Origin: Macrostomum lignano
Taxonomy: Eukaryota
Length of the DNA: 64,000 bases
Assembly: GCA_002269645.1 (NCBI GenBank)
Contig: NIVC01001994.1
Span: 1-64,000 of the forward strand
Reading direction: 5' to 3'
Program-made: the position numbers and the translations under genes
Shown here: in pieces, positions 4,821 to 55,432 of the stretch
How positions within the stretch are numbered: position 1 is the stretch's first letter
Layout of the letters: the number at the start of each line of letters is the position of its first letter
Notes under the pieces: generated by a model
What the model saw: the letters and a program-made list of their open reading frames with translations, nothing else
Databases searched by the model: none
What the model was told of the DNA's origin: nothing

Positions 4821-7800
4821 GCGGCGGCAGCAGCGGAGGCGACTGATGTAGCTGACCCAATGCTAGGCGCTGATTTTCAAAGCCGTCAATTAGCCGACGG
4901 TCTGCAAATCGAAGACTTCACCGACGGACCCCTGGACGAAAGCATCCTAGAAGCCTACGGAGTTGTTCGGGGCGGTCAGGAAGTGAGGAAACAGACATTT
5001 TTTCTGTTACATACAGACGTTAATTTCAGAGGAAGTCTTTATTTACAATAAGTTTGTGTAAGAAGAGCACCACCTCCTGTGCTGACTTCTGACCACATAC
5101 AAGCACGCAGATACTGTACGCAGGCATACACACACAGGTGCACAGTGGTCCTGACTTTCTAATCGAAAAGTATGTACACTCTCTGTGCCTTGGGGCTGGC
5201 CTGATCATGGGTGTTGAATCGCACGCCAACCCCAACAGACTAGCTTATTGTGCATACAAGCCCCTAATGAATGTAGCGGCCTGAATGAACGGAATTCAAC
5301 CCGCGGGTCTGAGCTGCTCTGCCCATCCTACTCTGCAGGAAGTCAAAGGCCCAGTAGAGAAGGTCAGCAAAGTTCGCAAACTCGGAACGCTGGAGTCGTC
5401 TGTTAAATACGACAGCTCCCAGAAAATTGTAACCGTGAAGATCATCCAGACTCACGAGCTTCCCCGACCGGGCACGTACGACTTTGGCGGCAAGCTGGGT
5501 ACGAACCTGAAGTGGAACTCCATCCAAGTGACGCTCGCTCTGCTGCCGGAGAAAAAGCAGAGAAACAAGACAACGATTGCCAAGGGAGACAATCCGCAGT
5601 TTGATGAGACTTTCATGTTCACCAACATCTCTTCGGGTAAAGTTGAATATTGACTTTTGATAGTGCGGTCTTGTCTTGATTTTCATCATTGATTTTTCTT
5701 AGTGTCTTAGTAAGCATTTGACCATTTCCACCGGGTTTAAAATGGCTACTCATAGTTGTTCGGCCGTGTCAGAAACTTGCCGTTCAGTAATTTACTTTGA
5801 ATAAACTTCGCTTGTAGTTACTGAGGAGCTCAGCCGCAAAGAGCTTAGTCCTTGGGAAGCTTCATCCTTTGTCCAGGAGGAGCTTAATCCTTAGTTACGT
5901 TTGTTAAAATTCGTACGAGGTGTATATGAAGTATACGAGTTGTGTAATACACGAGGTGTGGACTACAAAAAACGGAGTTCGACTAAAACTTATCTACAGT
6001 AGTGTAAGTCTTCTTAAAGCATAGCTTCCCAGCTTTCATATGAGGCAGACTAAAGTCCAAGCATCTATGTTTTCATAATTTTTTAAATCATTAGTTGGGA
6101 GGTCGAAGTGCAAAGTGCTTTGAGAGGCTGATGTTGAGGAAGCGCGGCGTGTTCGATGTGAACAATTGGAGAACGATGCATGCTGGCTGCATCGTGATAG
6201 TGCCACAGTGCAAAAGGCGATTCCAGTGAAGCAGATTTTGCTAAAGTCAGGTTGCAGCAGAGTTGGGACCTCGTGTTGCTCACCCAATATTGGCACCGTG
6301 CGGTTTTTTGGCTCTTCTCCAAGGTGAAACAAGTCCTCAAATGAACAAGATTTGAAGACTTAGAGTCCATCAATCAGAGAATTACACGGGTGCTTGCTAA
6401 TACGAGCTAAGCAGCATCACAAAGGAAGGCTTCCAGAGTTGAATCATTAGCTGACACCAACGATTGAAATTTTTGAAATTTAAAGCAAGTTCTTGTTTCT
6501 TTTTAATGACACTTTTCGCAGCATTAACTTCTGTGGCTCATACTCTAGCAGGTTTTCCAATATAAAATCACAAATATAAGACTAAATTATTAATTACCTG
6601 ACCCATCGGATTTGCAGTGGAATTCGGTCGACTTGGCATCCGTTTTCGCGCCTACGGCTGTCAGCACAAGCGTCGCAAACTGCTCATGGCTGAGAACATT
6701 CTGGCGCTGGCGTCGTTGGCGTCGCCGAAGAACGAGACAATTCTTCATCTGCCATTGGAGCTTCGGGCTGGAGACTATGCTAGACGGGTGAGGCATCCCA
6801 GCTGGTTGTTTGTACTAAAGTCGAATTTTGTTTCAGGCGCAAAGCGTAGCATCAAGGTGTGGAAATACCCGTTCCGACATGCTGCCACCTCTTGACATGC
6901 GCTCTATGATGTAGTTTAGAGTCCACCGACTAAAGTTGGGTCAAAAAAACTTTTACATCAAGTCGTGAGTCTCTTTGATGTATCATTTGATACCAGCACC
7001 AAGTCACAAAGTAGTGCATAACATTAAACAATTTAAGTAGCCACCTAGAAAAGTTCCTATCCTCAGAGGTGAACACTTCAAACTCGATACCGAGGACTTT
7101 CTTTCGCTTTTACCATGTTTGGTTTCACAAATGTTTTCCGTGCAATGGTGCAAGATGGAGTCTCATTGCCGATTGCTTCCATTCATCCTCACAGGGTTCT
7201 GAAGATGCCAAAGATGACGCTGACGAGTTGCAAGTGGACGGTTGGACGTCGTTAGGAGTCACCGGATTTCCGGAATTATTTGTTGGCATAACGTACAACG
7301 CCTCAACTGGTCAGCTAGCTACCGAGATTATCAAGGGCAGCTCGTTTAAGCTTCCTGGAATGTCCAGAACACCTGGTGAGTACGAATTTAAGATTCATTA
7401 ATTTCGAATAACATGACTACTTTTGATTAACAAAAGATGCCTCATCATTTAAAACAATACAACTCATACTTTACTTCAGAAACGTACGTTAAAATATCTC
7501 TAATGGCGTCGAATGGTCACGTGCTATTCAAATCGAAGACAACTTCATCTGAGGGCACTCAGAACCCGATGTGGAAGGAGAACTTTGTATTTCCAGTCAA
7601 CAAATTTCAGCTTACTGACATGACCATTATGGTGGCCGTGTACGCTAAAAAGACTATGAATAGACGAGAAATCATTGGTTGGTTCTCTATCGGTAAGTTG
7701 AAGTGATTTTTTATGTAGATTATCACTAAATATAGATATTTAGAACTGTCACCAAAGTAACCCATCATCAAAGCGACCCGTCACCAAAGTGACCCGTCAC

Positions 7801-8232: not shown

Positions 8233-9040
8233 ACGAAGTACAATATTATTCAAAGAAACTCTTTTGTGGAACAAGGGAAATAATTACTGGCATCTTTCGC
8301 CGTGTTCAACTGCAGCAATCGGTGCTCACCGGACGCGCACCCTCCTGTTCAGGAGACCTCGTTAACACTCTCTTTTCTTTTCCCGAAGCCGCTCTGTATT
8401 ATTACTCAAATTTTTATTATGATTACGTAATATTTTAATGCTATAATCTCTGATTGTCATGCATGTATTCGTTTTGGGTGAATATTTTTCCAAAGCTGTT
8501 ATAATTTGGCTTGAAGCCGACAGTTCATTGTGGTATTATGCTGATTGCCAATCTAATTTAACCTTCTTAAATTATTCCTCATTGGCACTGCAACACAGTT
8601 GCCGGCAGTAAATGTCAGAGTTAAATTGTTTGTTCGACTGTATCAACGGTTAAAATATAAATTTATCTATCCACGAAAAATATTTATTTACATTGTCATA
8701 TGCGAAGACTAAAACGATAATATTTATGATTGTAAACAGTTCCGCCTGGCTCAAAGAAATTATCTAAGAAGACTAGAAGCGTTTTATAAATGGAAAAAAT
8801 TATTATCGTGGATAATGAACTTCATACTCGCGCAGTAGAGTCAACTGCATATGCATTAAGATTTAAACAAAATTCAAATTGACAGAAAGCCAATACTTTT
8901 AGTTAAACTACCGCACTAGTAACATTAATAATTGATTACATCTGCCCAATGGCCAGATGTGCAACCGACAGCTCAGCCGAAGCTATTGCGCGGCGCATCT
9001 GAAGGCTGCGTACGGCTGTTCAGTCTAAGGAGTGGAGGGG

Positions 9041-9204
9041 AGCTAATGCTGGCACCCATTTTACAGGTGAGTGAATTGAAGCAATGCAGAGTTAAGTGTC
9101 TTGCTCAATGACACAAATTGTTCCAAGTGGGATCGGGAATCGAACCCCCAACTATTCAGTCGTGAGTCGGGCGCTCTAACCACTAGGCTACAACTCCCTA
9201 CACT
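9041..9204 (-). mobile_element. tRNA-derived CORE-type SINE, copy 1
   Basis: Minus strand shows A-box TAGCCTAGTGGTTAG and B-box GGTTCGATTCC, then TGAGCAAGACACTTAAC...CTGTAAAATGGG, which resembles the MIR/CORE domain. A second copy lies at 48546-48709. Confidence 0.85.
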
Positions 9205-9292
9205 AGATCATACAAAATAAGAACTAGCACTTTTACTGCAAGTAGAAAGATGCGATTTTTAAAAGTAAATTTCAAGAGAAACATTAAATTAA

Positions 9293-12200
9293 CAGTAGAA
9301 CTACCAAGGGGGGGGGGGGAAAATTTCCCCCCCCCTGACAATTTTTTTTGCTGCGCCGGAACGGAGCAACGCAGACACACAAAATTCAAGAACACGGGCT
9401 AACTTTTTGTTGCGCACCTTCTCAAACAAGAATCAAGTCGCCAGCCCTCCGGACCGTCGAGATATTCGACGATTCTGCCAGAAGGTCGGATTTTTCCCAT
9501 AAGCGCTAGTGTATTCAGTACACCCCTGTGCGCCAATCAGCACTGCGCCTCAGTGCAGCCTTGCCAAGTCTCCAAATTTCATCAGCACGTCGACCACATG
9601 TGTCTGCATCAGCTCTGACTTCGTTGGTCACTAGCCTTCACCCAGGCGGAGCTTCTGGACCTTCAACAGGTGGCACCAAGTGACTATGGACACTCTGATA
9701 CGAATTTCTCGAGTTTCGCTGATCAAGCCTCGACAGTGGGCATACCTCAACTGCTAGGTATCCTCAGCTAGTCTCTCGAGCCTTCCATCATCACCCCGAC
9801 GCCGTCGGCACCTTCAACGGATTACACCAGGTGACTATGAACACCCTGATGCAAATTTCTCTAGTTTCGCTGATCAAGCCTTGCCAATGGGCAAGCCTCA
9901 ACCGCGAAACATCTTCAGCTAGTCTCTCAAGCATTCAGTCATCACCCCGACGCCGTCGGCACCTTCAACAGATGACACCAGGCGACTATGAACTTTGATG
10001 CGAATTTCTCTAGTTTCGCTGATCAAGCCTCGACAGTGAGCAAGCCTCAACTTCTGGACACCCTCAGCTAGTCTCTCAAGCATTCCGTCATCATCCCGAC
10101 GCCGTCGGCACCTTCAACAGGTGGCACCAGGTGACTATGAACACCTTGATGCGAACTTCTCGAGTTTCACCGATCAAGCCTCGACAGTAGGCAAGCCTCA
10201 ACTGCCGGACACCCTCAGCTAGTCTCTCAAGCATTCCGTCATCATCCCGACGCCGTCGGCACCTTCAACAGGTGGCACCAGGTGACTATGAACACCTTGA
10301 TGCGAACTTCTCGAGTTTCACCGATCAAGCCTCGACAGTAGGCAAGCCTCAACTGCCGGATACCCTCAGCTAGTCTCTCAAGCATTCAGTCATCACTCGG
10401 ACGCCGTCGGCACCTTCAACAGATGACACCAGGTGACTATGAACACCTTGATGCGAACTTCTCGAGTTTCACCGATCAAGCCTCGACAGTAGGCAAGCCT
10501 CAACTGCCGGATACCCTCAGCTAGTCTCTCAAGCATTCCGTCATCATCCCGACGCCGTCGGCACCTTCAACAGGTGGCACCAGGTGACTATGAACACCTT
10601 GATGCGAACTTCTCGAGTGAAGTGACGGTTCATTGGTTTGCTAGCATGGGTAACTGTGTGCGGTTTTTTGCTTAACTTTATTCTGCTAACTCAGTCACTT
10701 TGCAATTCAGTGCAATTCAGTGTACATCGTTGCTCTAGCCTTGCCTCGCCCCTTAAGTCCCTCCACTTGCTCAATCATGCAGTGCATCAATATAGTTCAA
10801 TACTCCACTTCAATATTTTCAATAGTCGCAATATTTAAACCATTGCTCTCGATCTGTGTCTCGTCAAGCAACTTAGACTATTCTACTACTGCAAATATAT
10901 CGCAAGAATTTATACTCGTTCAAACAACATTCGATTCCTGACTTTCGCGTCACGTCATCGAGTTTCACCGATCAAGCCTCGACAGTGGGCAAGCCTCAAC
11001 TGCTGGACATCCTCAGCTAGTCTCTCAAGCATTCCGTCATCATCCGGACGCCGTCGGCTCTTTCAACAGATGACACCAGGGGAGTAAGGACACCTGAGCG
11101 TGATTTTTCATCATGCTCTTAACATTTCTGAAGCTCTCAAAATTTTTCAAGCACGGACATTGCTATAGTTCAGCTTGAACTCATGTTGCTGTATATTTAT
11201 ATTATTATTACACATACTTTTATGCATACGAGCTACATACATATTTTATTCGAAAAGCTGTTTAGTTTATTCAGCTATAATATTGAACCCAATGCAGAAA
11301 GGGTTATGCTTTTAAAAAGCCAGTAAATTCAGTCGGTTTTTTCATTTTTTAATGATTCAGAAATGTTAAGAGCATGATGAAAAATCACGCTCACGTGTCA
11401 TTACTCCCCTGGTGCCACCTGTTGAAGGTGCCGACGGCGTCGGGGTGATGACGGAATGCTTGACTGACTAGCTGAGGATGTCCGGCAGTTGAGGCTTGCC
11501 TACTGTCGAGGCTTGATCGGTGAAACTCGAGAAGTTCGCATCAAGGTGTTCATAGTCACCTGGTGCCACCTGTTGAAGGTGCCGACGGCGTCGGGGTGAT
11601 GACTGAATGCTTGAGAGACTAGCTGAAGATGTTTCGCGGTTGAGGCTTGCCCATTGGCAAGGCTTGATCAGCGAAACTAGAGAAATTTGCATCAGGGTGT
11701 TCATAGTCACCTGGTGTAATCCGTTGAAGGTGCCGACGGCGTCGGGATGATGACGGAATGCTTGAGAGACTAGCTGAGGGTATCCGGCAGTTGAGGCTTG
11801 CCTACTGTCGAGGCTTGATCGGTGAAACTCGAGAAGTTCGCATCAAGGTGTTCATAGTCACCTGGTGTCATCTGTTGAAGGTGCCGACGGCGTCCGAGTG
11901 ATGACTGAATGCTTGAGAGACTAGCTGAGGGTATCCGGCAGTTGAGGCTTGCCTACTGTCGAGGCTTGATCGGTGAAACTCGAGAAGTTCGCATCAAGGT
12001 GTTCATAGTCACCTGGTGCCACCTGTTGAAGGTGCCGACGGCGTCGGGATGATGACGGAATGCTTGAGAGACTAGCTGAGGGTGTCCGGCAGTTGAGGCT
12101 TGCCTACTGTCGAGGCTTGATCGGTGAAACTCGAGAAGTTCGCATCAAGGTGTTCATAGTCACCTGGTGCCACCTGTTGAAGGTGCCGACGGCGTCGGGA

Positions 12201-13028
12201 TGATGACGGAATGCTTGAGAGACTAGCTGAGGGTGTCCAGAAGTTGAGGCTTGCTCACTGTCGAGGCTTGATCAGCGAAACTAGAGAAATTCGCATCAAA
12301 GTTCATAGTCGCCTGGTGTCATCTGTTGAAGGTGCCGACGGCGTCGGGGTGATGACTGAATGCTTGAGAGACTAGCTGAAGATGTTTCGCGGTTGAGGCT
12401 TGCCCATTGGCAAGGCTTGATCAGCGAAACTAGAGAAATTTGCATCAGGGTGTTCATAGTCACCTGGTGTAATCCGTTGAAGGTGCCGACGGCGTCGGGG
12501 TGATGATGGAAGGCTCGAGAGACTAGCTGAGGATACCTAGCAGTTGAGGTATGCCCACTGTCGAGGCTTGATCAGCGAAACTCGAGAAATTCGTATCAGA
12601 GTGTCCATAGTCACTTGGTGCCACCTGTTGAAGGTCCAGAAGCTCCGCCTGGGTGAAGGCTAGTGACCAACGAAGTCAGAGCTGATGCAGACACATGTGG
12701 TCGACGTGCTGATGAAATTTGGAGACTTGGCAAGGCTGCACTGAGGCGCAGTGCTGATTGGCGCACAGGGGTGTACTGAATACACTAGCGCTTATGGGAA
12801 AAATCCGACCTTCTGGCAGAATCGTCGAATATCTCGACGGTCCGGAGGGCTGGCGACTTGATTCTTGTTTGAGAAGGTGCGCAACAAAAAGTTAGCCCGT
12901 GTTCTTGAATTTTGTGTGTCTGCGTTGCTCCGTTCCGGCGCAGCAAAAAAAATTGTCAGGGGGGGGAAATTTTTCCCCCCCCCCCTTGGTAGTTCGACGG
13001 GCGGAAAAATGGCTTGGTATTCCTACTG
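9293..13028. mobile_element. Foldback-type element (3736 bp) with very long modular inverted arms (9293-11132 and 11356-13028), internal 151-bp subrepeats and TTAA flanks
   Basis: The right arm is the reverse complement of the left arm. Termini are CAGTAG...CTACTG, with TTAA at 9289-9292 and 13029-13032. Subrepeat period is 151 (gcacc at 10108, 10259, 10410, 10561). The central spacer 11133-11355 is AT-rich; no transposase ORF is seen. Confidence 0.9.
10618..10957. mobile_element. Solo LTR (340 bp) inserted in the foldback left arm
   Basis: TG...CA ends with imperfect inverted repeat TGAAGTGACG / CGTCACGTCA. 5-bp TSD TCGAG at 10613-10617 and 10958-10962. Absent from the mirrored right arm. 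Confidence 0.8.
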
Positions 13029-15626: not shown

Positions 15627-17721
15627 ATGGGCCTAATTAAGAAAGCGATTGTTGGCGCAGTGATCTCCATCGCGGTGTACCAGGTGCTGCATCATGTCCT
15701 GTACGATGCTTACGCCATGTGGCGGTACGCGCCGAACCGAGAGAACACGTCTGGCAAACGGGTTTTGATCACCGGTTCGAGTAAAGGAGTTGGCAGGGCA
15801 CTGGCCCAGTTATATTGTGAGCTCGGAGCTCATGTGATAGTGCACAGCAGAAGTTTGAAATCGCTGGAGGAGGTGAGCTTCAGCGAAGAACTGTTTCCGT
15901 TTTAGATGCATAAGATTTACAGGTGTTCTTATCTGATATGATAATATGATAATGATCTGATCTGATCTGATATTATCTGATATGATAATATGATCAATTT
16001 TATCTTTAAGCCTTCTTACACACTATCTAATCCACGATCAAAATCCTTAATTAACAATCAACAGGTGCAAGCCGAATGTCGCAAGCTGGGCGCCGGAAGC
16101 GTCTACGTCGTCACCGGGGACATGTCGGTAGTCGGTCAAGCTGACAAAGTGGTCAACTGGGCCGCGAAAGCCATGGGCGGTCTTGACATCGTAATCGTCA
16201 ACCACGTCAGCACGTACGTCTTCGAGACGCTTCACTCGGTGGTGTCGCGCCTACGGTCGGGTGAACTGCAGAAATCTATGCAGGTGGATTTGTTCAGCTA
16301 CGCTGAGACTGCTCTAGCTGCCATCCCTATCTTGGAGAGGACATCCGGCAGCCTTGTGCTGGTGTCCAGCGTGGCTGGCAGAATGCCTGTGCCCTACTTT
16401 TTCCAGTACGCGTCGGCAAAGGCTTCGCTGGAAGGCTTCTCCAAAAGTCTGAGACAAGAGCTGGCCATCAACGGGTCCAATGTGCACTGCGGTGTCGCCA
16501 TCCTCGGAGCCATCGACACGCAGTCTGCTCACGATCTGCTGCCGTGAGTCACTTCGCGGCAGGAGGAACAGTTTCCGTCAGGTCACAAAGTGCACTTTGT
16601 ACTCTATAAATGCAGAGACATCCCTGTAATCGCGTGTTCACTATTCACTTTCTTAACTTCCGAATTCGGGTCAGTTATATCTTCGATCCGAATACAGCTG
16701 GGTGGATGAATGAACAGTAAATGAGAGAGCACAGAGGGTGAGAGAGCACAGAGGGTGAGAGAGCACAGAGGGTGAGAGAGCACAGGGGGTGAGAGAGCAC
16801 AGAGGGTGAGAGAGCACAGAGGATGAGAGAGCACAGGGTGAGAGTGCACAGAGGGTGAGAGAGCAGGGGGTGAGAGAGCACAGAGGGTGAGAGTGCACAG
16901 AGGGTGAGAGTGCACAGAGGGTGAGAGAGCAGGGGTGAGAGAGCACAGAGGGTGAGAGTGCACAGGGGGTGAGAGTGCACAGAGGGTGAGAGAGCAGGGG
17001 GTGAGAGAGCACAGAGGGTGAGAGTGCACAGAGGGTGAGAGAGCAGGGGTGAGAGAGCTCAGAGGGTGAGAGAGCACAGAGGATGAGAGAGCACAGGGGG
17101 TGAGAGAGCACAGATGGTGAGAGAGCAACGAGGGTGAGAGAGCACAGAGGGTGAGAGAGCACAGAGGATGAGAGTGCACAGGGGGTGAGAGAGCACAGAT
17201 GGTGAGAGAGCAACGAGGGTGAGAGTGCACAGATGGTGAGAGAGCAACGAGGGTGAGAGAGCACAGAGGGTGAGAGAGCACAAAGGGTGAGAGAGCAACG
17301 AGGATGAGAGGGCACAGAGGATGAGATCGCAGAGGGTCTTCCACAAACCCAACTGTACTCGTCGTGTTCACCAGTAGACCATATTTCGTGGCCATCTTGC
17401 GTACGATATACTCGTACTAGTTAATGAGATGATCTCAAGGTAACTAACTGTTTAATGGCGAATGAGTATTTTTGTAAAGACTACTACACAAGCCGTCACA
17501 GTATAATATAATATATATCCCTGATTTTCTACAGAAAAGTCTTCTCTGGCCCGATCGACTACGCGCCTGTCAGACAGACTGCCGTCGGTATCGCCTCTGT
17601 GCCGGTCGGTCGCATCAACCAGCTGGTCACCCCGCCGGCGCTGAAAGCCGCCCTGCTGTTGGCGAGCTTGATGCCAGAGAAGACCGAAGAGCAGATCTGG
17701 CAGGGTGCCAAGCGCCTCTGA
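15627..17721 (+). CDS. HSD11B1-like: Classical short-chain dehydrogenase/reductase, 11beta-hydroxysteroid dehydrogenase 1-like; exons 15627-15872, 16065-16543, 17535-17721 (303 aa)
   Basis: N-terminal hydrophobic anchor, TGSSKGVG Rossmann motif, LDIVIVNH (NH in place of NAG, typical of 11b-HSD1), VSSVAG, catalytic YASAK and LGAIDT. Phases are consistent. Confidence 0.88.
16722..17335. repeat. 17-bp minisatellite (AGAGAGCACAGAGGGTG)n in SDR intron 2
   Basis: About 36 degenerate copies; explains the CSLTLCALSP ORFs. Confidence 0.97.
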
Positions 17722-19428: not shown

Positions 19429-22400
19429 TCAGCTTTGAGCCACGGACTCTTCACCGATGAAGCCCGAGTTGCTCTGGCCGCCGCCGATGACGAAGTTTTG
19501 TCCATCGCTGCGCTTTGTGACGCTTCCGTTGTCCTCTTGGTCCCGCGTTTCCGGGTCGCTTCCGGAATTATCGACATTCGACCCTTCCTCAGTCGCCTCT
19601 ATGGGACTGGCTTCGTCCCCTGGCGTTCGCTTCTCATCCAGCGACATTGACTTCATCCCGATGTCGCCGGCTTCGGCGTCGACAGTGCTGCTGACGTCAC
19701 CGACGCGGTTGGATTGGCGCATCCAGCTGGGTCGGATGTGGTACGCGATTACGTTGCAGATCACCAGCAGAATTATCAGTGCGATCCACTGCGAGACAGG
19801 ATGTAGGAGTTTGGCTATTATACATACGGTAACAATAACAGCATCATCAGCATCACTGAAAATAACAAAAGCGCGACAACAACAGGAACAGAGAATATGA
19901 TGGTGCTTCATAATTCCGATGGATCCTGACCAAGTCTATAGAGCGGAGTCACATCACAAACTCGAAAAATCACATCGTCGAAAAGTTTAGCAACAACCAT
20001 CACAAGCTCGAAAAGGGTTAGGGTTAGGGTTGGAGCTTGTGCCTTTTCGAGCTTGCGATGGTGGTTGCTAAACTTTTCGACGATGTGATTTTTCGAGTTT
20101 GTGATGGTGACCCCATAGAGCGACCCATGGAGGTCCTTCTCTGGGTCCCTATCTAGGGTCGCAAAAACATAAAAACAACAGCAAAAACAACAGAAACACA
20201 CAAGCAAGCAATAGCATTATTATTGACAGTAAAACAAAATAATCCAATTTGTCGGAAAAAATGACATGCGCTTTGAAACTTACCGTAACAAAGCAGGTCA
20301 TCAGCGTTTCCAGTCCGAAGTCGTACCAGCGCGATCCCGGGTCATTGTCCGCTGTGGCGGATATCTCGTCATAAATCCACCAGATTAGCAGGGCGATCGC
20401 TTCGATTGGAGCAACGATGCTGAAAAATTTTTAAATCGATTTTTCAGCATCCCAGATTTCTATTGAAGATGATTTGTGTTTGCTACGTTAACCAGATTTT
20501 CAGAGCTGTTAAAGTTGATCAAAGAATAGAAACTCAACTTGTCTTGGTCGACATTCAAAAAATCGATTCAGGTAATTCTGGTAACCGTTAAGAGGCTTCC
20601 TATGCAGTATAGGCCAAGACTCTCATTCATAAACTCACAGAATAATCACCATGGTGACGTTCGTCAGCGGCCAGTCACCGATTCCGTACTTGTTAACCAT
20701 GTCCTCTTTGAACGTATTCCAGCCTACTTTGAAGACCAGCGCTTGAAACATCAGGCCGGACGGAAGCAGAGCGAAGCCCCAGATGAAATCCTGTACGGTT
20801 TTTGGAGATGTTTAAATAAGTATGATAAAATGCATACTTTCCAGGCCAATTGAGCCTGGGAGCAAGCACTTTACTTGTAATTCTTACTGGGAGAATCAAG
20901 CCTAGTGGGGGGGGGTCTACGAATATGAAGTAACCAATTCGAGAAATGCTTATATTATATAAATTTTAACCTGATTGTCCAACACTTGAATGCTGAGTGC
21001 GGAGGGCAGCCCAATAGAGAACATGAGCAGTCCGCACACCGGGGTCGCCAGGCGTCTGGAAACTGCGACAACGGTTGACAGTGCAATTATCATCATTATC
21101 ACCATCATTTTTCTTTTATATTTAGATCAGCATGTCTTCTCAACCATCTCTGTAACATTTAACAGCAGTTGGTTTTCACTTACGCCCAAAGTTGCACAGC
21201 GTCTGCGATGTGTGCTCAACATCCGCAATGACTGTGCTGAGTCCGGCAAAGCACAGGCACAGAAAGAACATGATGCACAATAATTTGCCAACGACCCCCA
21301 GGCTGCCGAACAGGATGGGAATCCACACGAAGGTGAGTCCGGTGGATGCTGGCCCAGTGGTTTTAATGATCTCAACGATACCGGTGCGGGACAAGCTCGG
21401 GTTGCTGTTAACCAGGGTGGAGAACACTGTGCCGAATATTGTGATGGCGCAGATGAGGCTGCATTATGAGTTGTTGGGGATTTTAATATTAGTAAATGCT
21501 TGCTTCTGGATAAAATTTGGTCAGTGTTTTAGCAATATTACTTTAATTCTCCATGTGATATCTTGTCGGCTTACCTGACAAGATTGTTCATAAGAGGAAT
21601 CATTGTGGCAAATTTCACAACGCCATTTTTGGCGCTCATGTACGTGGCGTACGGGACAATCAGACCCATGGCAGCGCCCGTGTCGAAAGCATTCTGCGTT
21701 AGCGCGTCCACCCACAGTTTTGCGTTTGACAACGATTCTGTAGTGGTGTTGGAAGAAATCTCTGGTACTTTTAAAATTGCATACATAGAGGCCCAGCAAG
21801 GTTTGCAGAATGCAGCGAGTGACGCGAGTGAAATCTTTCCAACATAAACTTCTCTGCTGTCTTCTCACGGGACACCCGCTTGAAATTTAATCAGCGAAAA
21901 CGCGTACCCCAGGGGATCATGGGGGCCGCCCTCCCACGCGAATAGGCTGGCATATATTATGGCAGGGGCACGTTTGGCCACACTGCTATCAATTTAAGCA
22001 GATCCCCAGCAACTACTTTAGTGCCCCTTGGTGCTGGCGCCCCTTGGTGCTGGCACATCTTGGTGCTAGCGCCCCTTGGTGCTAAAGCCCCTTGGTGCTA
22101 AAGCCCCTTGGTGCTAAAGCCCCTTGGTGCTAAAGCCCCTTGGTGCTGGCGCCCCTTGGTGCTGGCACATCTTGGTGCTAGCGCCCCTTGGTGCTAAAGC
22201 CCCTTGGTGCTAAAGCCCCTTGGTGCTAAAGCCCCTTGGTGCTAAAGCCCCTTGGTGCTAAAGCCCCTTGGTGCTAAAGCCCCTTGGTGCTAAAGCCCCT
22301 TGGTGCTAAAGCCCCTTGGTGCTAAAGCCCCTTGGTGCTAAAGCCCCTTGGTGCTAAAGCCCCTTGGTGCTAAAGCCCCTTGGTGCTAAAGCCCCTTGGT

Positions 22401-25400
22401 GCTAAAGCCCCTTGGTGCTAAAGCCCCTTGGTGCTAAAGCCCCTTGGTGCTAAAGCCCCTTGGTGCTAAAGCCCCTTGGTGCTAAAGCCCCTTGGTGCTA
22501 AAGCCCCTTGGTGCTAAAGCCCCTTGGTGCTAAAGCCCCTTGGTGCTAAAGCCCCTTGGTGCTAAAGCCCCTTGGTGCTAAAGCCCCTTGGTGCTAAAGC
22601 CCCTTGGTGCTAAAGCCCCTTGGTGCTAAAGCCCCTTGGTGCTAAAGCCCCTTGGTGCTAAAGCCCCTTGGTGCTAAAGCCCCTTGGTGCTAAAGCCCCT
22701 TGGTGCTAAAGCCCCTTGGTGCTAAAGCCCCTTGGTGCTAAAGCCCCTTGGTGCTAAAGCCCCTTGGTGCTAAAGCCCCTTGGTGCTAAAGCCCCTTGGT
22801 GCTAAAGCCCCTTGGTGCTAAAGCCCCTTGGTGCTAAAGCCCCTTGGTGCTAAAGCCCCTTGGTGCTAAAGCCCCTTGGTGCTAAAGCCCCTTGGTGCTA
22901 AAGCCCCTTGGTGCTAAAGCCCCTTGGTGCTAAAGCCCCTTGGTGCTAAAGCCCCTTGGTGCTAAAGCCCCTTGGTGCTAAAGCCCCTTGGTGCTAAAGC
23001 CCCTTGGTGCTAAAGCCCCTTGGTGCTAAAGCCCCTTGGTGCTAAAGCCCCTTGGTGCTAAAGCCCCTTGGTGCTAAAGCCCCTTGGTGCTGGCGCCCCT
23101 TGGTGCTAAAGCCCCTTGGTGCTTTGGTGCTAAAGCCCCATGGTGCTAAAGCCCTTTGGTGCTAAAGCCCCTTGGTGCTAATGCTAAAGCCCCTTGGTGC
23201 TAAAGCCCCTTGGTGCTTTGGTGCTAAAACCCCTTGGTGCAAAACACAACAGATAAAAAACTGTCTCTGCAATTACATGTACGTTTCTGAATTCTGAGTC
23301 AATGTTATCATTTGCATTCCAGTATTATGAACTTACCTACATCCGGGGTGAACAGAAACCGGATGCCGTAGTCGCCAAACGGCTGCAGCACCGACCAGGT
23401 GTACGTCACCACAATGATCACTAGCAGGGTGGGCACCAGCACCAAGTTTACCTTCTCGATCCACGTGATGCCGCCAATGACGCAGGCCCCAGCCAAAAAG
23501 ATTGCTAAGCCATGGAACAGCGCTGGCCAGGCTGAGTTCTGGTAGGCAACGAAATCGATATTGATTTTGAGTACGAGTAGCATAAGTCGTATTAAGAACT
23601 GTCTGAACTCTGTGTCCACACGCCTATCTGCCTCACCGTGAGATTATCGAAAATCAATGCGCTCTCCTCTTCAGTCTGCGGTAGTTCGCTTACAATGCAG
23701 AGGCGGATCATCTCGTACAGGTAGTACAAGCACCAACCTAGGATGACCGCGTAATAGCAGCTGCAGTGTTGAAGAGTTGGGGCTATCGATCGTTAGTTAC
23801 GTTTTGTTACATATTGCTACGTTACATATTGCTACAGGTAAATGAATATGAATGAATTGCCAATCTAGCCTACATCAATGGATGAAGGAACACAATGGAT
23901 TGCTAATCTAGCCAACATCATGAATGAAGGAATAGAATGGATTGCTAATCTAGCCAGCTTCATGGATGAAGGAATAGAATGGATTGCTAATCTAGCTAAA
24001 AACGTCAATGGATGAAGGAATAGAATGGATTGCTAATCTAGCCAACATCATGAATGAAGGAATAGAATGGATTGCTAATCTAGCCAACGTCATGGATGAA
24101 GGAATAGAATGGATTGCTAATCTAGCCAACATCATGAATGAAGGAATAGAATGGATTGCTAATCTAGCCAGCTTCATGGATGAAGGAATAGAATGGATTG
24201 CTAATCTAGCTAAAAACGTCAATGGATGAAGGAATAGAATGGATTGCTAATCTAGCCTACATCAATGGATGAAGGAACAGAATGGATTGCTAATCTAGCC
24301 AACATCATGAATGAAGGAATAGAATGGATTGCTAATCTAGCCAGCTTCATGGATGAAGGAATAGAATGGATTGCTAATCTAGCCAAAGATCATCGATGAA
24401 GGAATAGAATGGATTGCTAATCTAGCTAAAAACGTCAATGGATGAAGGAATAGAATGGATCATCGATCATCGATAAAGGAATAGAATGGATTGCTAATCT
24501 AGCCAAAATCATGGATGAGGAAATAAAATGGATTGCTAATCTAGCCAAAATCATGGATGAAAGAATAGAATGGATTGCTAATCTAGCCAAAATCATGGAT
24601 GAGGAAATAAAATGGATTGCTAATCTAGCTAAAAACGTCAATGGATGAAGGAATAGAATGGATTGCTAATCTAGCTAAAAACGTCAATGGATGAAGGAAT
24701 AGAATGGATTGCTAATCTAGCTAAAAACGTCAATGGATGAAGGAACAGAATGGATTGCTAATCTAGCTAAAAACGTCAATGGATGAAGGAATAGAATGGA
24801 TTGCTAATCTAGCTAAAAACGTCAATGGATGAAGGAATAGAATGGATTGCTAATCTAGCCAAAGATCATCGATGAAGGAATAGAATGGATTGCTAATCTA
24901 GCCAAAATCATGGATGAGGAAATAAAATGGATTGCTAATCTAGCCAAAATCATGGATGAAAGAATAGAATGGATTGCTAATCTAGCCAAAATCATGGATG
25001 AGGAAATAAAATGGATTGCTAATCTAGCCAAAATCATGGATAAAAGAATAGAATGGATTGCTAATCTAGCCATCGACATCGTGGATTTAAAATCGATTCT
25101 TATTGTTGTTGTAGGCCTATGGAAGTAATTATTAACTTAGTAAGCTAATAAATTACTGGTAATGCAATAGGTTGCCAGATTTTCAAATGAAATCATGCCC
25201 ATATAAACTTGCCTGATGAAGAAGGTAACTGACGACACCCAGCCTCCGCACCAAATGAATTTGTCGCCCATGGCCCGTTGAAAACTTTGAATTGGAGTTT
25301 TTTTATAATACCGACCGATGACGTACTCAATGAGCAGCATTGGACTGGACCAGATGAAGAGAAACAGCATCCAGGTAATCAAGAAGATCAGCGTCCCTTG

Positions 25401-25523
25401 GCTAGCGCTGTTCTGGGCTGCTATTCTCGGAAATCGCCACACATTGCCTGTGCCAACCACCGTGCCCATGCACGAGAACACGATACCAAGAGTGGAGCTG
25501 AATTCCTTCTTCTCTTCGGACAT
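19429..25523 (-). CDS. SLC6-like: SLC6/NSS (SNF) family Na+-dependent transporter, prokaryote-like type; exons 25523-25213, 23760-23637, 23538-23337, 21737-21575, 21458-21184, 21062-20971, 20790-20639, 20419-20284, 19788-19429 (604 aa)
   Basis: Motifs VVGTGNVWRFP, PMLLIEYVIGR, YYAVILGWCLYY, GITWIEK, LWVDALTQNAFDTG, GLTFVWIP, FAGLST, GLPSAL and WIYDE. Exon lengths sum to 1815 nt with all phases matching. Intron 1 has a GC donor. Confidence 0.93.
19945..20114. mobile_element. Palindromic MITE (~170 bp) with a 7-8 bp TSD and a (TTAGGG)-like core, in SLC6 intron 8
   Basis: About 70-bp inverted arms, termini GGAGTCAC / GTGACCCC, direct repeat ATAGAGC(G) at 19938 and 20115, centre AGGGTTAGGGTTAGGGTT. 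Confidence 0.8.
22023..23240. repeat. 16-bp minisatellite (GCCCCTTGGTGCTAAA)n, ~1.2 kb, in SLC6 intron 3
   Basis: About 75 near-perfect copies; same family as the array at 14606. Confidence 0.99.
23851..25080. repeat. 42-45-bp minisatellite (GATGAAGGAATAGAATGGATTGCTAATCTAGCCAACATCATG)n, locus 1, in SLC6 intron 1
   Basis: About 28 copies; the same unit occurs at 42673-43220 and 49339-53425 in the opposite orientation. Confidence 0.98.
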
Positions 25524-27565: not shown

Positions 27566-27572
27566 TATAAAA
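27566..27572 (+). promoter_or_regulatory. Putative TATA box (TATAAAA) of the neuropeptide gene
   Basis: Canonical TATAAAA 118 bp upstream of the ATG at 27684. Confidence 0.5.
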
Positions 27573-27683
27573 TGGAGGCAGCTCCTGCAGTCTGAGTCGA
27601 TCCGGTAGGATAACTCAAACTCGCAACGGAAGGAGTCGAGAACCAGGAAGAGAAAATAGAAGAATTTTTCAGCGACACTGAGA

Positions 27684-28516
27684 ATGCGTTTCGCTTGGAC
27701 CCTGCTTCTGCTTGGCCTGCTGGCGTGCTGGGCTAACTGCGGGTCTGTTGAAGCTGGCTCTCGTGAGTGCCTCCGTACAGTCGCATTGCAGTCACGTTTT
27801 TTAGTTAATTTTTAAAGACTCCAATCATTGAATGCATAATTTTCCTGCAATTTCAGATCCTGATTGGGACGAAATGGCTGAAGGGTAAAAGCTTTTTTTA
27901 GAATGGATTTGCTACTAAATAGGCGTACTCGACCAATGGAACCTTTGAAATTAAAGGTTAATGTATTCTATTCTGAGGTGTCTTTGTGTGCACATGCAAT
28001 CTGTAGATAACATCCGTTGTGCTAGTTTACATAGATTCTTTCTTTCTCGATGCATCGTTGTGTCAGCCCTAATAATAATGCGTACAATAATAATGCTCGC
28101 AGTAGGATTGTGCTCATTCCGGAGCACATGGTCTCACATCCAGTTCTGAAGCAATTCTACCTATTCCGCTGACTCCTGAGCACACACTGTACACAGGCAC
28201 GCACTCATACACAGCATGTACACTCTCTGTGCCTTGGGAGTTGGCCCTCGTGGCTCAAATTCGTGCCATTGTACCTACGAAATGTCCACGCCTCACAGCC
28301 ATAATTGGCACAATTTCCTCCGAAAAAAAACGTTCCAGCCCGGAAGACGAGCCAGACGATGCCGGCTGTCACTGGGTGTGCCGGCCGCGCCACCTGAGCA
28401 AGCGCCCTTTCGGCGCCCTGTTCCGGCCCAGGCACCCGCCTCACCCGGATTCGGATCGCAAGAAGCGTCCGTTTGGGCCGCTGTTTAGGCCTCACGGTCG
28501 CAGGCCGCGCGACTGA
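27684..28516 (+). CDS. Neuropeptide prohormone (94 aa); exons 27684-27762, 27857-27884, 28339-28516; predicted peptides PFGPLFRPH-amide and PFGALFRPRHPPHPDSD
   Basis: Signal peptide MRFAWTLLLLGLLACWANCGSVEA, acidic spacer, two paralogous PFG[A/P]LFRP peptides bounded by KR, KKR and RR, and an amidation Gly (HGRR). Splice phases 1 and 2 join correctly to give 285 nt. Confidence 0.85.
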
Positions 28517-28785
28517 TTCCGACTAGTTTGACGCATCGCTCCGTGTTGGCCTCGCATCACATAGACTTGAATGATTTTCAAGCATAAAAGCACTGACTGA
28601 AAACTAAATAAACTTATTGTGTGGGCGTTACGACCACTCAGGCATAGAAGCTTTATGCTGACTAACTTGTCGCATATATTGTGCTTTTTGAATCGACCGT
28701 CTGCGTTGGTTGGTACGCTAAAATTCAAAATTAATAGTGGCAATCTTTGAGTATAATCTTCTTAGTCGTATTGAAGCAATAAAAG

Positions 28786-34125
<5,340 letters not shown>

Positions 34126-41716: not shown

Positions 41717-44018
41717 AGTGCTCTAAATAACGAGACTCCTGTTTTCTCACTCGACCGGAATTTTTTGTTTAATCTGCTTAACTAATCTCTGCGTTTCAGT
41801 TTTTAGTTTCACTGTTAATTTTAGGTTTTTTCTAAGCGCAAGTGTAATTGAATTTTTTATTCATATTAGTCAGGCATATTGCGTACAGCATTATAGCGTA
41901 TTAGTTAAGGTAAAGGTAAATAGACTGCTTGTAACTAGTTTTTCCTTCATGTGGATTGGCTTTAACGAAGCCTTTTGTATTTCAAGTAATGCTGAATTCG
42001 CTGGACTGAGGACAATATAGTTACACGATGATATGCTATTCCTTCACTTTCAATAGATCATACTATTAGTATGGGACGTGCTTTTTTATTTCAATGTATG
42101 CTTTTTTTCATCATTTAAATGCTAAAAATACTTAATAGGTCATTGCACTGTGTGTATGTGTGTGTTTTCGTGTGTCAAAAAAAATTGCAAAATAAGTGCC
42201 CACCATTGTATACCGTACCAACAAGTGCCCGGTGCGTGATTGTGTGTGTGTGTGTGTGTGTGTGAGTTCTGTGGTTCTGACTCGCTGAAGTCTAAAGTCT
42301 GACTAAACACATGCAGGATCGACACTTCAAAGTTAGCCATAGACTGTTTGATTAAAAAGAATTTTGTATCGTTAAAATTTGCTTGTCAACTCGTCATCGG
42401 AGCTGGACGACTCAAAGATTTATTAGCTCGTAGCCAACATATTATAAAAGTACTACGGAACCTTTCAAGCTACCGAAAAATGCCGGATGATCAGCCAGTT
42501 TTCACAATCGATAACTCCCTTGCAGAGGAGACTATGAGAAGTTTTGTGAGACGGCACTGGACTACAGTGTACTTTTGCATTGGTCTGCTGGTGCACATTG
42601 GATGCCTGGTTGTACTGCATAGGACTGAGACTAATTCTGAGGTATGGCTGTGTTGCTTTGTGTTTGAGCCTGTTTGGCTAGATTAGCAATCCATTCTGTT
42701 CCTTCATTCATGATGTTGATGGCTAGATTAGCAATCCATTCTGTTCCTTCATTCATGGTGTTGATGGCTAGATTAGCAATCCATTCTGTTCCTTCATTCA
42801 TGATGTTGGCTAGATTAGCAATCCATTCTGTTCCTTCATTCATGATGTTTGGCTAGATTAGCAATCCATTCTATTCCTTCATCTATGATGATGTTGATGG
42901 CTAGACTAGCAATCCATTCTATTCCTTCATCCATGATGTTTGGCTAGATTAGCAATCCATTCTATTCCTTCATCCATGATGATGTTGATGGCTAGACTAG
43001 CAATCCATTCTATTCCTTCATCCATGATGTTTGGCTAGATTAGCAATCCATTCTGTTCCTTCATTCATGATGTTGGCTAGATTAGCAATCCATTCTGTTC
43101 CTTCATTCATGATGTTTGGCTAGATTAGCAATCCATTCTGTTCCTTCATTCATGATGTTGGCTAGATTAGCAATTCATTCTATTCCTTCATCCATGATGT
43201 TTGGCTAGATTAGCAATTCATTTTATTTGCTCATACTTATTTTCACGTCAAGCCTTTTTGTGAGGCAAGTGAAATCAAGCAAGTTACGCTAATAAATTGC
43301 AGACGCCACCGCAAGGCTACCAGCTGACCTTGCAGAGGATAGCGGCCCTATTGATGTACGTTAACGTCATAGCGATGGCTCTGATGGTGCTGCTTGATTC
43401 GCACCTGAGCATCCGTTGGCAGCGAGCCAACTCGCCGCTCAACATTGTTGAAGAGGATTCGGATCTGCCAATGACTAAAAGCGAAGCCGAAGGTGAACTT
43501 AGGTTGATCTCGAAGTTCTCCAGGAAGGAATGGGAGCCGGTTATGAATGTGAGTACATGATCTTTACTTCAAGTCTCGAAGGTCAATTGACCCCGCCTTA
43601 ATTCAGATGTAGTGTTAGATATAAGTATAACTGGATTGTTACAAAAAACCCTGGAACGAATCACCCTCAATTCCTGCACCATTCCAAGGTCGTCGGTCAC
43701 GTGAGCAAAGCAACAATCGCAATTTTCTCCTGGGTTCTGACTCTGGCAATTCTCGTCAACATTGTGACATTGTTTATCCCGCCTGGCATTATGCCAAGCC
43801 TGGCCACACAGGCCACTCTGTTCAGTTTGGCCATACCTGGCCTGCTGTGCCTCCTGGCCTGCCTGCTGTTCGTGCTGCACCACATGTACTTTAAGTATCG
43901 ACAGGCTCGCAAGACGTTCAGTCGGACTATTATCAATATGAGCCGTTCGCAACCTCCCGGTTCGTACAATCCGCTGAGATCGGCTTCGATGGATTCAGAT
44001 TTTCCGGCGGAAGAGTAA
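41548..44018 (+). CDS. Unrecognised 4-TM membrane protein (~311 aa); exons 41548(or 41582)-41699, 42434-42641, 43303-43548, 43689-44018
   Basis: The last three exons have good GT-AG sites, consistent phases and four hydrophobic helices (VYFCIGLLVHIGCLVVL; IAALLMYVNVIAMALMVLL; IAIFSWVLTLAILVNIVTLFI; LFSLAIPGLLCLLACLLFVL). The 5' exon inside the repeat is inferred and has a weak donor GTAATG. Confidence 0.65.
42673..43220. repeat. 42-45-bp minisatellite family, locus 2 (reverse orientation), in an intron of the 4-TM gene
   Basis: About 13 copies of TTGGCTAGATTAGCAATCCATTCTRTTCCTTCAT. Confidence 0.97.
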
Positions 44019-48709: not shown

Positions 48710-49338
48710 CTGGTGAATATTTAAATTCAACATGCACTTAGAACATGACTTACCATGATTGAAAAGAGAGCGAAAACCTTGCAATGAGAAACAAGTGCAA
48801 TATGATAACTAGATATTAATATGAAAAAACTGCAGTATATACAGATTCAAAGCTTATGCTTCAGCCAATGACAGGTCATACTTAAACTGCAAGCAGCAAC
48901 CGACTGAAGTTTCAACAGCAAGACAGTAGAAAATTTGTACTTTTCAATTTGTCCAATCCTCATTGATGAGCTGCTGCTGGCAAATAAAATTCCTGCAACT
49001 GCCCGAAGTAAGATCTGTTCTCTCTCATTCTCCGGCACACTGATCAATATTTCGAATAAGGCTGATGAGACCTCAGTCAAAATTGATTTTTCATGCGAAA
49101 TTAATTTTCTCTATCTCTCAAGACATATAACTGTTGGAGAGAGATAAACAGCTTATGGGAGAGGGCAAAGGGGCGAGCAGTGACCAAATAGGATTGCTTG
49201 ATGAGGCAGATTTGAAATCAAGATATTGAGGAGTATTGACACTGCATAGGAAAAAGATCCATTTTCCCCATTTTTCCGGGAAATCAAAAGCCGTTAGCTA
49301 GTCGCCAAGGAGACTTTTACCAGAAGCTTTTTATTATC

Positions 49339-52300: not shown

Positions 52301-53425
52301 CATGATGTTGGCTAGATTAGCAATCCATTCTATTCCTTCATCCATGATGTTGGCTAGATTAGCAATCCATTCTATTCCTTCATCCATGATGTTGGCTAGA
52401 TTAGCAATCCATTCTATTCCTTCATCTATGATATTGATGGCTAGATTAGCAATCCATTCTATTCCTTCATCCATGATGTTTGGCTAGATTAGCAATCCAT
52501 TCTATTCCTTCATCCATGATGTTGGCTAGATTAGCAATCCATTCTATTCCTTAATCCATGATGTTGGCTAGATTAGCAATCCATTCTATTCCTTCATCCA
52601 TGATGTTGGCTAGATTAGCAATCCATCCTATTCCTTCATCTATGATATTGATGGCTAGATTAGCAATCCATTCTATTCCTTCATCCATGATGTTGGCTAG
52701 ATTAGCAATCTATTCTATTCCCTCATCATGTCGGCTAGATTAGGAATCCATTCTATTCCTTCATCCATGATGTTGGCTAGATTAGCAATCCATTCTATTC
52801 CTTCATGCATGATGTTGGCTAGATTAGCAATCCATTCTATTCCTTAATCCATGATGTTGGCTAGATTAGCAATCCATTCTATTCCTTCATCCATGATGTT
52901 GGCTAGATTAGCAATCCATTCTATTCCTTCATCCATGATGTTGGCTAGATTAGCAATCCATTCTATTCTTTCATCTATGATATTGATGGCTAGATTAGCA
53001 ATCCATTCTATTCCTTCATCCATGATGTTTGGCTAGATTAGCAATCCATTCTATTCCTTCATCCATGATGTTGGCTAGATTAGCAATCCATTCTATTCCT
53101 TAATCCATGATGTTGGCTAGATTAGCAATCCATTCTATTCCTTCATCCATGATGTTGGCTAGATTAGCAATCCATTCTATTCCTTCATCTATGATATTGA
53201 TGGCTAGATTAGCAATCCATTCTATTCCTTCATCCATGATGTTTGGCTAGATTAGCAATCCATTCTATTCCTTCATGCATGATGTTGGCTAGATTAGCAA
53301 TCCATTCTATTCCTTAATCCATGATGTTGGCTAGATTAGCAATCCATTCTATTCCTTCATCCATGATGTTGGCTAGATTAGCAATCTATTCTATTCCCTC
53401 ATCATGTCGGCTAGATTAGGAATCC
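49339..53425. repeat. 42-45-bp minisatellite family, locus 3 (4.1 kb), with higher-order duplications of 1277 and 1403 bp
   Basis: Variant units recur at offsets of 1277 (49961/51238; 49622/50899) and 1403 (50509/51912; 50899/52302). Confidence 0.98.
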
Positions 53426-53988
53426 ACTGTGTCCTTACAATCAAGGACGAGATAAAAAAGCTGTTTATTCTGCATATATTGAGCTATACAAAGCCCTAAG
53501 CATCATCCCAATATCTCATTGCTTCGCAAGCACAGCTAAATGAAAATATTTCAAACCTTCTACTTGTTTCTCTTCCTTCGCACACATGGTTCAGGAATTT
53601 CCCAGAGCAATCGCAAAATCTGCGAGCATTTGAGAGCAACAGAAATGTCGAGAGCAGGGATCGCAGCTAGCCTTAAGCTGCTGAGCAAATATTTGAGAAC
53701 AGAGTTGGGAAACAGGCCTGCAAAGAGAAAGCTATAGCTGTTTTATCCTTAAAATAATCAGCAATATCATCATCATAAAGAGAGAAATCTACATCAGAAT
53801 CTCCCTAGACCCTACTATATTTTTACGATGCATAGGAGCAACTATAAAAGTCAGATATAATGTTCAACTATACTACTGACAGTTCAAAACAAACAGACAG
53901 TAGTATTGCTGCTGATGAGAAGCAGGTTTAATCAATTGAAATGCGAATCGAATGGGAGGATCTCTATGCTGATTGTCAAGAGAAACGG

Positions 53989-54864: not shown

Positions 54865-54952
54865 TGTGTGTTTGCCTGCCTGCCTGCCTACAAGTGTCTG
54901 TCTGTGTGTCTGTCTGTCTGTCTGTGTGTTTGCCTGCCTGCCTGCCTGCAAG

Positions 54953-55015
<63 letters not shown>

Positions 55016-55050
55016 GTGTTTGCCTGCCTGCCTGCCTGCAAGTGTCTGTA

Positions 55051-55135
<85 letters not shown>

Positions 55136-55240
55136 TAGTGTCTGTGTGTCTGTCTGTGTGTCTGTCTGTGTGTCTGTCTGTGTGTATGTCTGTCTGTCTG
55201 TCTGTCTTAGTGTCTGTGTGTCTGTCTGTGTGTCTGTCTA

Positions 55241-55317
<77 letters not shown>

Positions 55318-55432
55318 GTGTCTGTCTGTCTGTGTGTCTGTCTGTCTGTCTGTCTGTCTGCCTTAGTGTCTATCTGTCTGTCTGTGTGTCTGTCTATATG
55401 TCTGTCTGTCTGTCTGTCTGTCTGCCTGTCTG
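54865..55432. repeat. Compound (GTCT)n/(GCCT)n microsatellite
   Basis: Direct observation; explains the VCLS ORFs. Confidence 0.97.

Follow-up and report, generated by a model that had tools for sequence, protein, structure and literature searches.

A candidate multi-copy peptide prohormone with PFGxLFRP units encoded in the genome of the flatworm Macrostomum lignano

A stretch of 64,000 nucleotides from the genome of the flatworm Macrostomum lignano (assembly GCA_002269645.1, contig NIVC01001994.1), referred to here as the window, contains at positions 27684-28516 a short gene, Mlig024080. This locus raises the question whether its product is a precursor of secreted signalling peptides and, if so, whether such peptides belong to any described family. 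Coordinates of the window are identical to those of the database record, as established by an exact-sequence match. The explanation favoured in the current analysis, with reasonable though by no means high confidence, is that Mlig024080 is a transcribed gene for a secreted multi-copy peptide precursor of the neuropeptide or peptide-hormone type.

An earlier note on this DNA, made from the letters alone, had read a precursor of 94 residues in three exons with an upstream TATA box. In silico splicing of exons 27684-27762, 27857-27884 and 28339-28516 gives an in-frame total of 285 nucleotides, the translation of which is 94 residues long (MRFAWTLLLLGLLACWANCGSVEAGSHPDWDEMAEGPEDEPDDAGCHWVCRPRHLSKRPFGALFRPRHPPHPDSDRKKRPFGPLFRPHGRRPRD). 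An identical protein is present in NCBI and UniProt as 'hypothetical protein BOX15_Mlig024080g1' (PAA61818.1 / A0A267EJZ6) on the same contig and at the same coordinates. The gene model was previously in the databases without a name, and it is the functional reading as a prohormone that the earlier note adds. The GenBank annotation of this assembly is based on RNA-seq only, with StringTie/TACO transcripts and a de novo transcriptome from which open reading frames (ORFs) were called by TransDecoder (PMC5730564). Lack of a spliced transcript had been named beforehand as one of two grounds for giving up the model; since the annotation is built from RNA-seq transcripts, a spliced mRNA joining 27762-27857 and 27884-28339 exists. 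The features of the gene are given below, with reference to the three copies (g1 in the window, g2 and g3) in which it occurs in the genome.

27566-27572, plus strand: TATAAAA box, 112 nucleotides 5' of the ATG, the same in all three copies
27664-27673, plus strand: pyrimidine tract and CAG (aatttttcag), ending 10 nucleotides before the ATG, kept in all three copies
27684-27762, plus strand: coding sequence of exon 1, 79 nucleotides, M1-S26 and the first base of codon 27
27763-27856, plus strand: intron 1, 94 nucleotides, GT..AG, g1/g3 divergence 8.6% with indels
27857-27884, plus strand: exon 2, a micro-exon of 28 nucleotides, H27-PDWDEMAE-G36 with a split codon at each end, free of substitutions between the three copies
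27885-28338, plus strand: intron 2, 454 nucleotides, GT..AG, g1/g3 divergence 9.7% with 93 gap columns
28339-28516, plus strand: coding sequence of exon 3 in the spliced reading, including the stop codon TGA (28514-28516)
28607-28612, plus strand: AATAAA polyadenylation signal, 91 nucleotides past the stop codon, the same in all three copies

The borders of intron 1 are ctc/gtgagt...tttcag/atc and those of intron 2 are aagg/gtaaaa...ttccag/ccc. The start codon has an A at position -3. Exon 2 is indispensable because its skipping moves exon 3 into another frame. Exon-2 skipping as a source of a productive isoform was considered and rejected, as exon 3 then shifts to the frame of the ORF 28216-28488 and both peptides are lost. 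An antisense ORF of 96 residues (28205-28495), which starts with GTG and lacks an ATG, was also rejected: the annotated transcript runs on the other strand, and the ORF probably results from the high GC content of the coding strand. A search of the window against Rfam identified no RNA family.

The sequence aatttttcag upstream of the start codon has the character of a strong 3' splice acceptor. It could be the acceptor of a spliced-leader trans-splicing event or of an intron in the 5' untranslated region (UTR), and in both cases a short outron would be transcribed from the TATA box at 27566. Trans-splicing has been reported for 38.8% of M. lignano genes (PMC5730564).

The precursor encoded by these exons has the following parts.

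27684-27755, plus strand: signal peptide MRFAWTLLLLGLLACWANCGSVEA, with likely cleavage between VEA and GS after residue 24
28340-28366, plus strand: exon-3 part of the acidic spacer, residues 37-45 (PEDEPDDAG), with one non-synonymous g1/g3 difference (A44D)
28367-28399, plus strand: C46-H/R-W-V-C50-RPRHLS, a candidate five-residue disulfide loop followed by the first RPRH unit, residue 47 being His here and Arg in g2 and g3
28400-28405, plus strand: K57-R58, dibasic cleavage site read from the sequence
28406-28459, plus strand: peptide copy 1, PFGALFRPRHPPHPDSD(R), with the core PFGALFRPRH at 28406-28435 and no Gly, hence no amidation
28460-28468, plus strand: K77-K78-R79, which together with R76 gives R-K-K-R and so also fits the furin-type consensus R-x-K/R-R
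28469-28504, plus strand: peptide copy 2, PFGPLFRPH (28469-28495), with the amide donor Gly89 (28496-28498) and R90-R91 (28499-28504)
28505-28513, plus strand: C-terminal tripeptide PRD in the spliced translation

The signal peptide was judged by inspection and its cleavage by the -3/-1 rule (V-E-A at -3 to -1). Residues 1-24 have the n/h/c layout of such peptides, in which M-R is followed by 15 mostly hydrophobic residues with hydropathy windows of up to 3.0 over residues 3-17, and the predicted cleavage removes Cys15 and Cys19, leaving Cys46 and Cys50, which may form a disulfide. The complete acidic spacer comprises residues 25-45 (GSHPDWDEMAEGPEDEPDDAG), begins in exons 1 and 2 and has a net charge of about -9. 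It is followed by a basic half of 49 residues (46-94) with a charge of +11, a pI of 11.9 and a content of 11 Arg, 3 Lys, 5 His and 10 Pro. The Pro-rich pro-peptide of 70 residues is probably disordered.

The hallmarks of a prohormone claimed by the earlier note are borne out by the sequence: besides the signal peptide, the sites KR58, (R)KKR79 and RR91 flank two paralogous PFGxLFRP(R)H units. The note had paired an amidated PFGPLFRPH with a PFGALFRP relative. PFGPLFRPH is indeed amidatable through the signal H88-G89-R90-R91; copy 1 has no such Gly, so that amidation can apply to one of the two copies only. Likewise the CHWVC loop holds for g1, while g2 and g3 have C-RWV-C. A weaker third unit, W-V-C-R-P-R-H-L-S-KR, lies upstream, and [C/F]-R-P-(R)-H is common to all three units. 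The pattern [KR][KR]PFG.LFRP occurs twice within 63 nucleotides and has no other match in any of the six frames of the window; two matches clustered in this manner, with none elsewhere, indicate that the pattern is not due to chance.

The strongest evidence that these units are functional comes from their comparison with each other. In a codon alignment of K-R-P-F-G-A-L-F-R-P-(R)-H with K-R-P-F-G-P-L-F-R-P-H, synonymous differences are found at 8 of 8.7 sites (pS 0.92) and non-synonymous differences at 1 of 24.3 sites (pN 0.04; Fisher p = 6e-6). Saturation of the synonymous sites contrasts with the retention of the peptide and of the dibasic site preceding it; the duplication is therefore old, with purifying selection acting on peptide and site alike. 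The PFGxLFRP(R)H core, being under selection, is likely to be the bioactive part. This selection speaks against both an ORF that arose by accident and a gene of recent de novo origin, and an old and constrained internal duplication predicts orthologs in related species. The conservation of units relative to spacers was assessed within one species, M. lignano.

A second line of evidence is provided by the genomic copies. The cluster of proteins at 90% identity consists of the three M. lignano copies g1, g2 and g3, which are 97-99% identical, and the reading frame is intact in all of them. At all three contigs the neighbours are the same, with a gene for a sodium:neurotransmitter symporter (SNF) upstream and a gene for a 3-beta-HSD/epimerase-like protein downstream, both on the minus strand. 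Three syntenic copies fit the known redundancy of the neopolyploid M. lignano genome (PMC5730564). Between g1 and g3 the exons differ by 7 substitutions in 285 positions (2.5%) and the introns by 43 in 454 (9.5%), an exon-intron contrast that is significant (Fisher p = 1.3e-4); the region of the 5' flank and 5' UTR has a divergence of 1.7%. All g1/g3 indels are outside the coding sequence. Within it, four differences are synonymous, two of them inside core 1, and three are non-synonymous. The amino-acid changes are A44D in the acidic spacer, H47R in the C-x3-C loop and H71R in the tail of copy 1, and none of these affects the PFGxLFRP cores or the cleavage sites.

The copies also differ in structure. 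In g3 (contig NIVC01000059.1, locus sequence 6001-6743) intron 2 is about 90 bp shorter than in g1 and g2 (window 27885-28338) and the 3' UTR has a 9-bp insertion. In DNA, g1 and g2 are almost identical over 1.4 kb. Given this near-identity and the divergence of g3, the set looks like two alleles or recent duplicates and one older homeolog. At the g2 locus (locus sequence 8283-12530) the 3-beta-HSD/epimerase-like gene is annotated with 247 residues compared with 374 at g1 and g3, and the SNF transporter with 547 compared with 604. These shorter neighbours may have been truncated, may be spliced in another way or may only be annotated differently.

Based on this architecture, a route of processing can be proposed. 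The signal peptide (residues 1-24) would direct the precursor into the endoplasmic reticulum, where Cys46 and Cys50 may pair. Prohormone convertases would cut after KR58, KKR79 and RR91, a carboxypeptidase would trim the basic residues, and peptidylglycine alpha-amidating monooxygenase would turn Gly89 into a C-terminal amide. The predicted products are PFGPLFRPH-NH2 (computed [M+H]+ 1066.5945), the non-amidated PFGALFRPRHPPHPDSD, an acidic fragment of 32 residues with the C-x3-C loop and the tripeptide PRD. Multiply charged, the amidated peptide has a computed [M+2H]2+ of 533.8009; for PFGALFRPRHPPHPDSD the computed values are 1942.967 ([M+H]+) and 648.327 ([M+3H]3+). The PFGxLFRP(R)H core probably acts on a G-protein-coupled receptor. 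The exon structure, its annotation from transcripts, the layout of the precursor and the selection on units and exons are shown by the data; how the precursor is cleaved and amidated, which cells secrete it and which receptor it uses, and with these the terms 'neuropeptide' and 'new signalling system' as applied to Mlig024080, are what we infer from the sequence. A homolog of PC2-type convertases, RNA815_2403.2, is known in M. lignano; its in situ pattern suggests expression in the nervous system and its RNA interference is lethal in hatchlings (PMC4490696).

Several observations weigh against a neuropeptide or hormone precursor. Copy 1 lacks an amidation signal. R-K-K-R also fits furin, and processing therefore need not be neuronal. 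The cationic half rich in Pro, Arg and His behind an anionic pro-piece resembles the precursors of host-defence peptides. In planarians, expression of some 'prohormone' genes is seen in testes and in the glands surrounding the copulatory apparatus and not in neurons (PMC2953531). The gene and protein identifiers of Mlig024080 do not occur in the main texts of the literature searched, nor in the supplements of four M. lignano transcriptome papers (PMC5816591, PMC7336406, PMC12896417 and PMC5946080). No ortholog outside M. lignano has been identified in the databases searched; the 'family' so far is therefore one gene with three near-identical genomic copies.

The searches behind this last point differ in reach. 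A word-indexed search of 5.8 billion proteins with the full precursor retrieved only its own 90% cluster of three M. lignano copies; with the basic half of 49 residues as query the source protein itself was not retrieved, so that the empty result is uninformative. An exhaustive HMMER search of 1.84 billion representative proteins revealed no homolog, at whole-library E-values which relatives sharing just two 9-residue motifs would escape. Its sole match besides the query itself, a Cys-rich tandem-repeat protein of 615 residues, has no PFG or LFRP motif and was rejected as spurious. Sequences in the PDB gave no match at E <= 10. In the JGI metagenomes, back-translated patterns had 600 matches, of which 0 were confirmed by tblastn. 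None of the strings PFGPLF, PFGALF or FRPHamide occurs in the roughly 8 million open papers searched, with an earlier description in McVeigh et al. 2009 or Koziol et al. 2016 not excluded.

Of the alternatives, the one that survives best, although we regard it as unlikely, is a secreted protein other than a neuropeptide, that is, a gland product (of seminal fluid, adhesive, mucus or rhabdites) or a cationic host-defence peptide rich in Pro and Arg. In the latter version the charge of the basic C-terminal half would be offset by the anionic pro-piece up to a furin-type cleavage. The charge pattern of the 21-residue spacer (-9) and the 49-residue half (pI 11.9), the R-K-K-R site and the glandular and testicular expression of planarian prohormone-like genes noted above all agree with it, and many rapidly evolving secreted reproductive proteins are described in M. 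lignano (PMC5977470 and PMC7336406). On the other hand, the dibasic sites and the short cores have been kept together by selection, which argues for cleavage into peptides of 9-17 residues, and the Gly-Arg-Arg amidation signal is typical of peptides of the regulated pathway. For an antimicrobial of the typical proline-rich type the cleaved peptides, with a net charge of about +1 to +2, would be too short and too weakly charged, and the PRP triplet is missing and two Cys are present. Mlig024080 is also not among the genes found in the supplementary files, possibly incomplete, of the positional and reproductive RNA-seq paper searched.

Quite improbable is a strongly diverged member of the neuromedin U/pyrokinin group (through FRPRH) or of the LFRFamide/short-NPF group (through GALFR) in which the amidated C-terminus was lost or shifted. 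Copy 1 has the strings LFRPR, FRPR and GALFR in common with those families; but the defining C-terminus is absent, FRPRH being followed by Pro-Pro, copy 2 has no Arg before its last residue and no copy is an RF-amide. Pfam, including its neuromedin U model, gave no match at E <= 10. The planarian pyrokinin-like precursor ppl-1 carries five copies of YFSPRM/Lamide (PMC2953531), and a BLASTP comparison with Smed-ppl-1 gave a non-significant E-value of 0.19. Least probable of all is an untranslated or non-functional frame (a non-coding transcript or young orphan with accidental prohormone features), for although the ORF is short, has no domain and no homolog outside the species in the searches above and is backed by transcripts rather than by protein, its repeat combines saturated synonymous change with near-complete conservation of amino acids, its exons are about four times more conserved than its introns between copies with no indel in the coding sequence and the frame intact in 3 of 3, and it has a good start-codon context, a TATA box and a poly(A) signal.

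Taking Mlig024080 as a peptide precursor, a further and bolder step can be suggested only tentatively, namely that PFGPLFRPH-amide and its non-amidated sibling are ligands of a peptide-receptor system without orthology to any of the bilaterian neuropeptide families so far described. The saturated synonymous divergence of the internal repeat would make the PFGPLFRPH system an old one, and it may be conserved across Macrostomorpha or in flatworms more widely. A rarer variant is descent from a peptide of the neuromedin U/pyrokinin type with a shifted amidated end, which, if true, is a natural experiment in ligand-receptor co-evolution.

The surroundings of the gene are unusually rich in tandem repeats, which matches the repeat content reported for the M. 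lignano genome. A satellite of 42-43 bp (unit ATTAGCAATCCATTCTATTCCTTCATCCATGATGTTGGCTAG) forms an array of 4.1 kb and two smaller ones (49333-53426, 42671-43222 and 23844-25072), one of which is inverted, and several frames contain long spurious ORFs that arise from these arrays. Arrays of a 151-bp repeat at 9659-10618 and 11408-12635 are inverted with respect to each other and about 800 bp apart, have 6.4 and 8.1 copies with about 90% identity and make up a large inverted tandem-repeat structure. Micro- and minisatellites are found at 867-1547, 29319-29538, 54895-55432, 22023-23217 and 33126-33828; their types are (CTAT)n, present twice, (TGTC)n, a 16-bp repeat with 75 copies and a 12-bp repeat with 59 copies.

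Other ORFs with domain matches have also been recognised in the window. An exon-sized ORF at 25137-25523 on the minus strand corresponds to the first part of the sodium:neurotransmitter symporter (SNF, E = 7e-14) that is the upstream neighbour of Mlig024080. Another at 15990-16547 on the plus strand matches short-chain dehydrogenases (adh_short, E = 7e-24). The ORF 62450-62878 on the plus strand has the HTH domain of Mos1/mariner transposases (Pfam HTH_48, E = 8e-11) and is probably a fragment of a mariner-type transposon.

Peptide signalling in flatworms has been catalogued only in part, and M. lignano is the flatworm model with working transgenesis. A prohormone without a name, kept by selection and with a short amidated peptide that is easy to synthesise, offers a cheap and testable entry point. 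Should its product prove to be neuronal, with a receptor of its own, it would represent a further signalling system specific to the lineage. Mlig024080 is best described as a plausible orphan prohormone, so far unnamed, of a very common kind; one more orphan multi-copy precursor in an invertebrate is unsurprising, as every neuropeptidome survey turns up dozens of lineage-restricted ones. The gene is in addition a case for asking how short motifs such as LFRPR and GALFR recur across families.

The earlier note had found its motif unlike any bilaterian family known to it. None of the databases and papers searched names a family for it, which agrees with that statement; the statement needs qualification in that LFRPR, GALFR and LFRP resemble parts of neuromedin U/pyrokinin, LFRFamide and RPamide peptides. 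In general plan the gene is close to the lineage-restricted multi-copy neuropeptide precursors of flatworms and other invertebrates, such as those of the planarian npp/spp genes (PMC2953531) and the 'novel flatworm NPPs' of McVeigh et al. 2009. These have about 100 residues, a signal peptide, an acidic spacer, short repeats between dibasic sites, a Gly-dibasic signal for amidation and, like Mlig024080, no ortholog recognisable beyond a narrow lineage. They differ in that Mlig024080 has two copies, one of them amidatable, and a C-terminal His-amide that is unusual, and the strings FRP, PFG and RPH are absent from the text and supplements of Collins et al. 2010 (PMC2953531).

With neuromedin U, copy 1 shares L-F-R-P-R, which forms residues 3-7 of porcine NmU-8 (YFLFRPRN), and with pyrokinins F-R-P-R as in the cockroach peptide LVPFRPRL (PMC1397894); short peptides following a dibasic site are a further point of likeness. 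Unlike neuromedin U, pyrokinin and CAPA peptides, Mlig024080 has no Pro-Arg-X-amide. Copy 1 reads P-R-H-P-P and continues PPHPDSD, and copy 2 reads R-P-H-G-R-R, which would give a Pro-His-amide. For the slug receptor of NMU/PRXamide peptides, Ala in place of a single PRX residue, whichever of the three, left almost no activation, and mollusc PRX peptides include (F/S)FFRPAPRGamide (PMC7749107).

The mollusc LFRFamides of the short-NPF type are multi-copy short peptides and have G-A-L-F-R in common with copy 1, as exemplified by oyster GALFRFamide and Aplysia GGALFRFamide (PMC4208409). In both copies of Mlig024080, however, LFR is followed by Pro and the peptide continues, with no RFG motif and no RF-amide. 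The cnidarian RPamides are short and proline-rich and contain the L-F-R-P of both copies, as in Antho-RPamide-4, GP(Hyp)SLFRPamide, and in Nematostella pQLLFRPamide (PMC7523074). In Mlig024080, by contrast, RP is followed by R-H or H-G, so that no RP-amide is possible, and the N-terminal residue is Pro and not the pyroglutamate often present in that family. The match to these peptides of a different phylum is most likely convergent.

Peptides of the CCHamide/excitatory-peptide type carry a two-Cys loop and a C-terminal His-amide on one and the same peptide. In Mlig024080 the loop C46-x3-C50, with a spacing of 3 residues, and the His-amide are split by KR58 and KKR79. Proline-rich antimicrobial peptides are long, uncleaved and cationic, with about 25% or more Pro, PRP motifs and no Cys, and multi-unit precursors with processing sites are known for those of the apidaecin type. 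Precursors of the apidaecin/Bac5 type resemble Mlig024080 in having an anionic pro-region followed by a cationic region rich in Pro, Arg and His, and in units parted by basic sites. The basic half of Mlig024080 has 20% Pro and 22% Arg, without the triplet and with the two Cys already mentioned and with conserved internal dibasic sites, and it differs in that the cleaved peptides would be short and weakly charged and in the amidation signal of the precursor.

None of the amidated C-termini by which these families are defined (PRX-, RF- or RP-amide) can be produced from the precursor. Matches of four or five residues from a single core of 8 residues to three unrelated families carry little weight, and Mlig024080 is therefore assigned to no named family and is filed as a prohormone of the multi-copy amidated-peptide kind.

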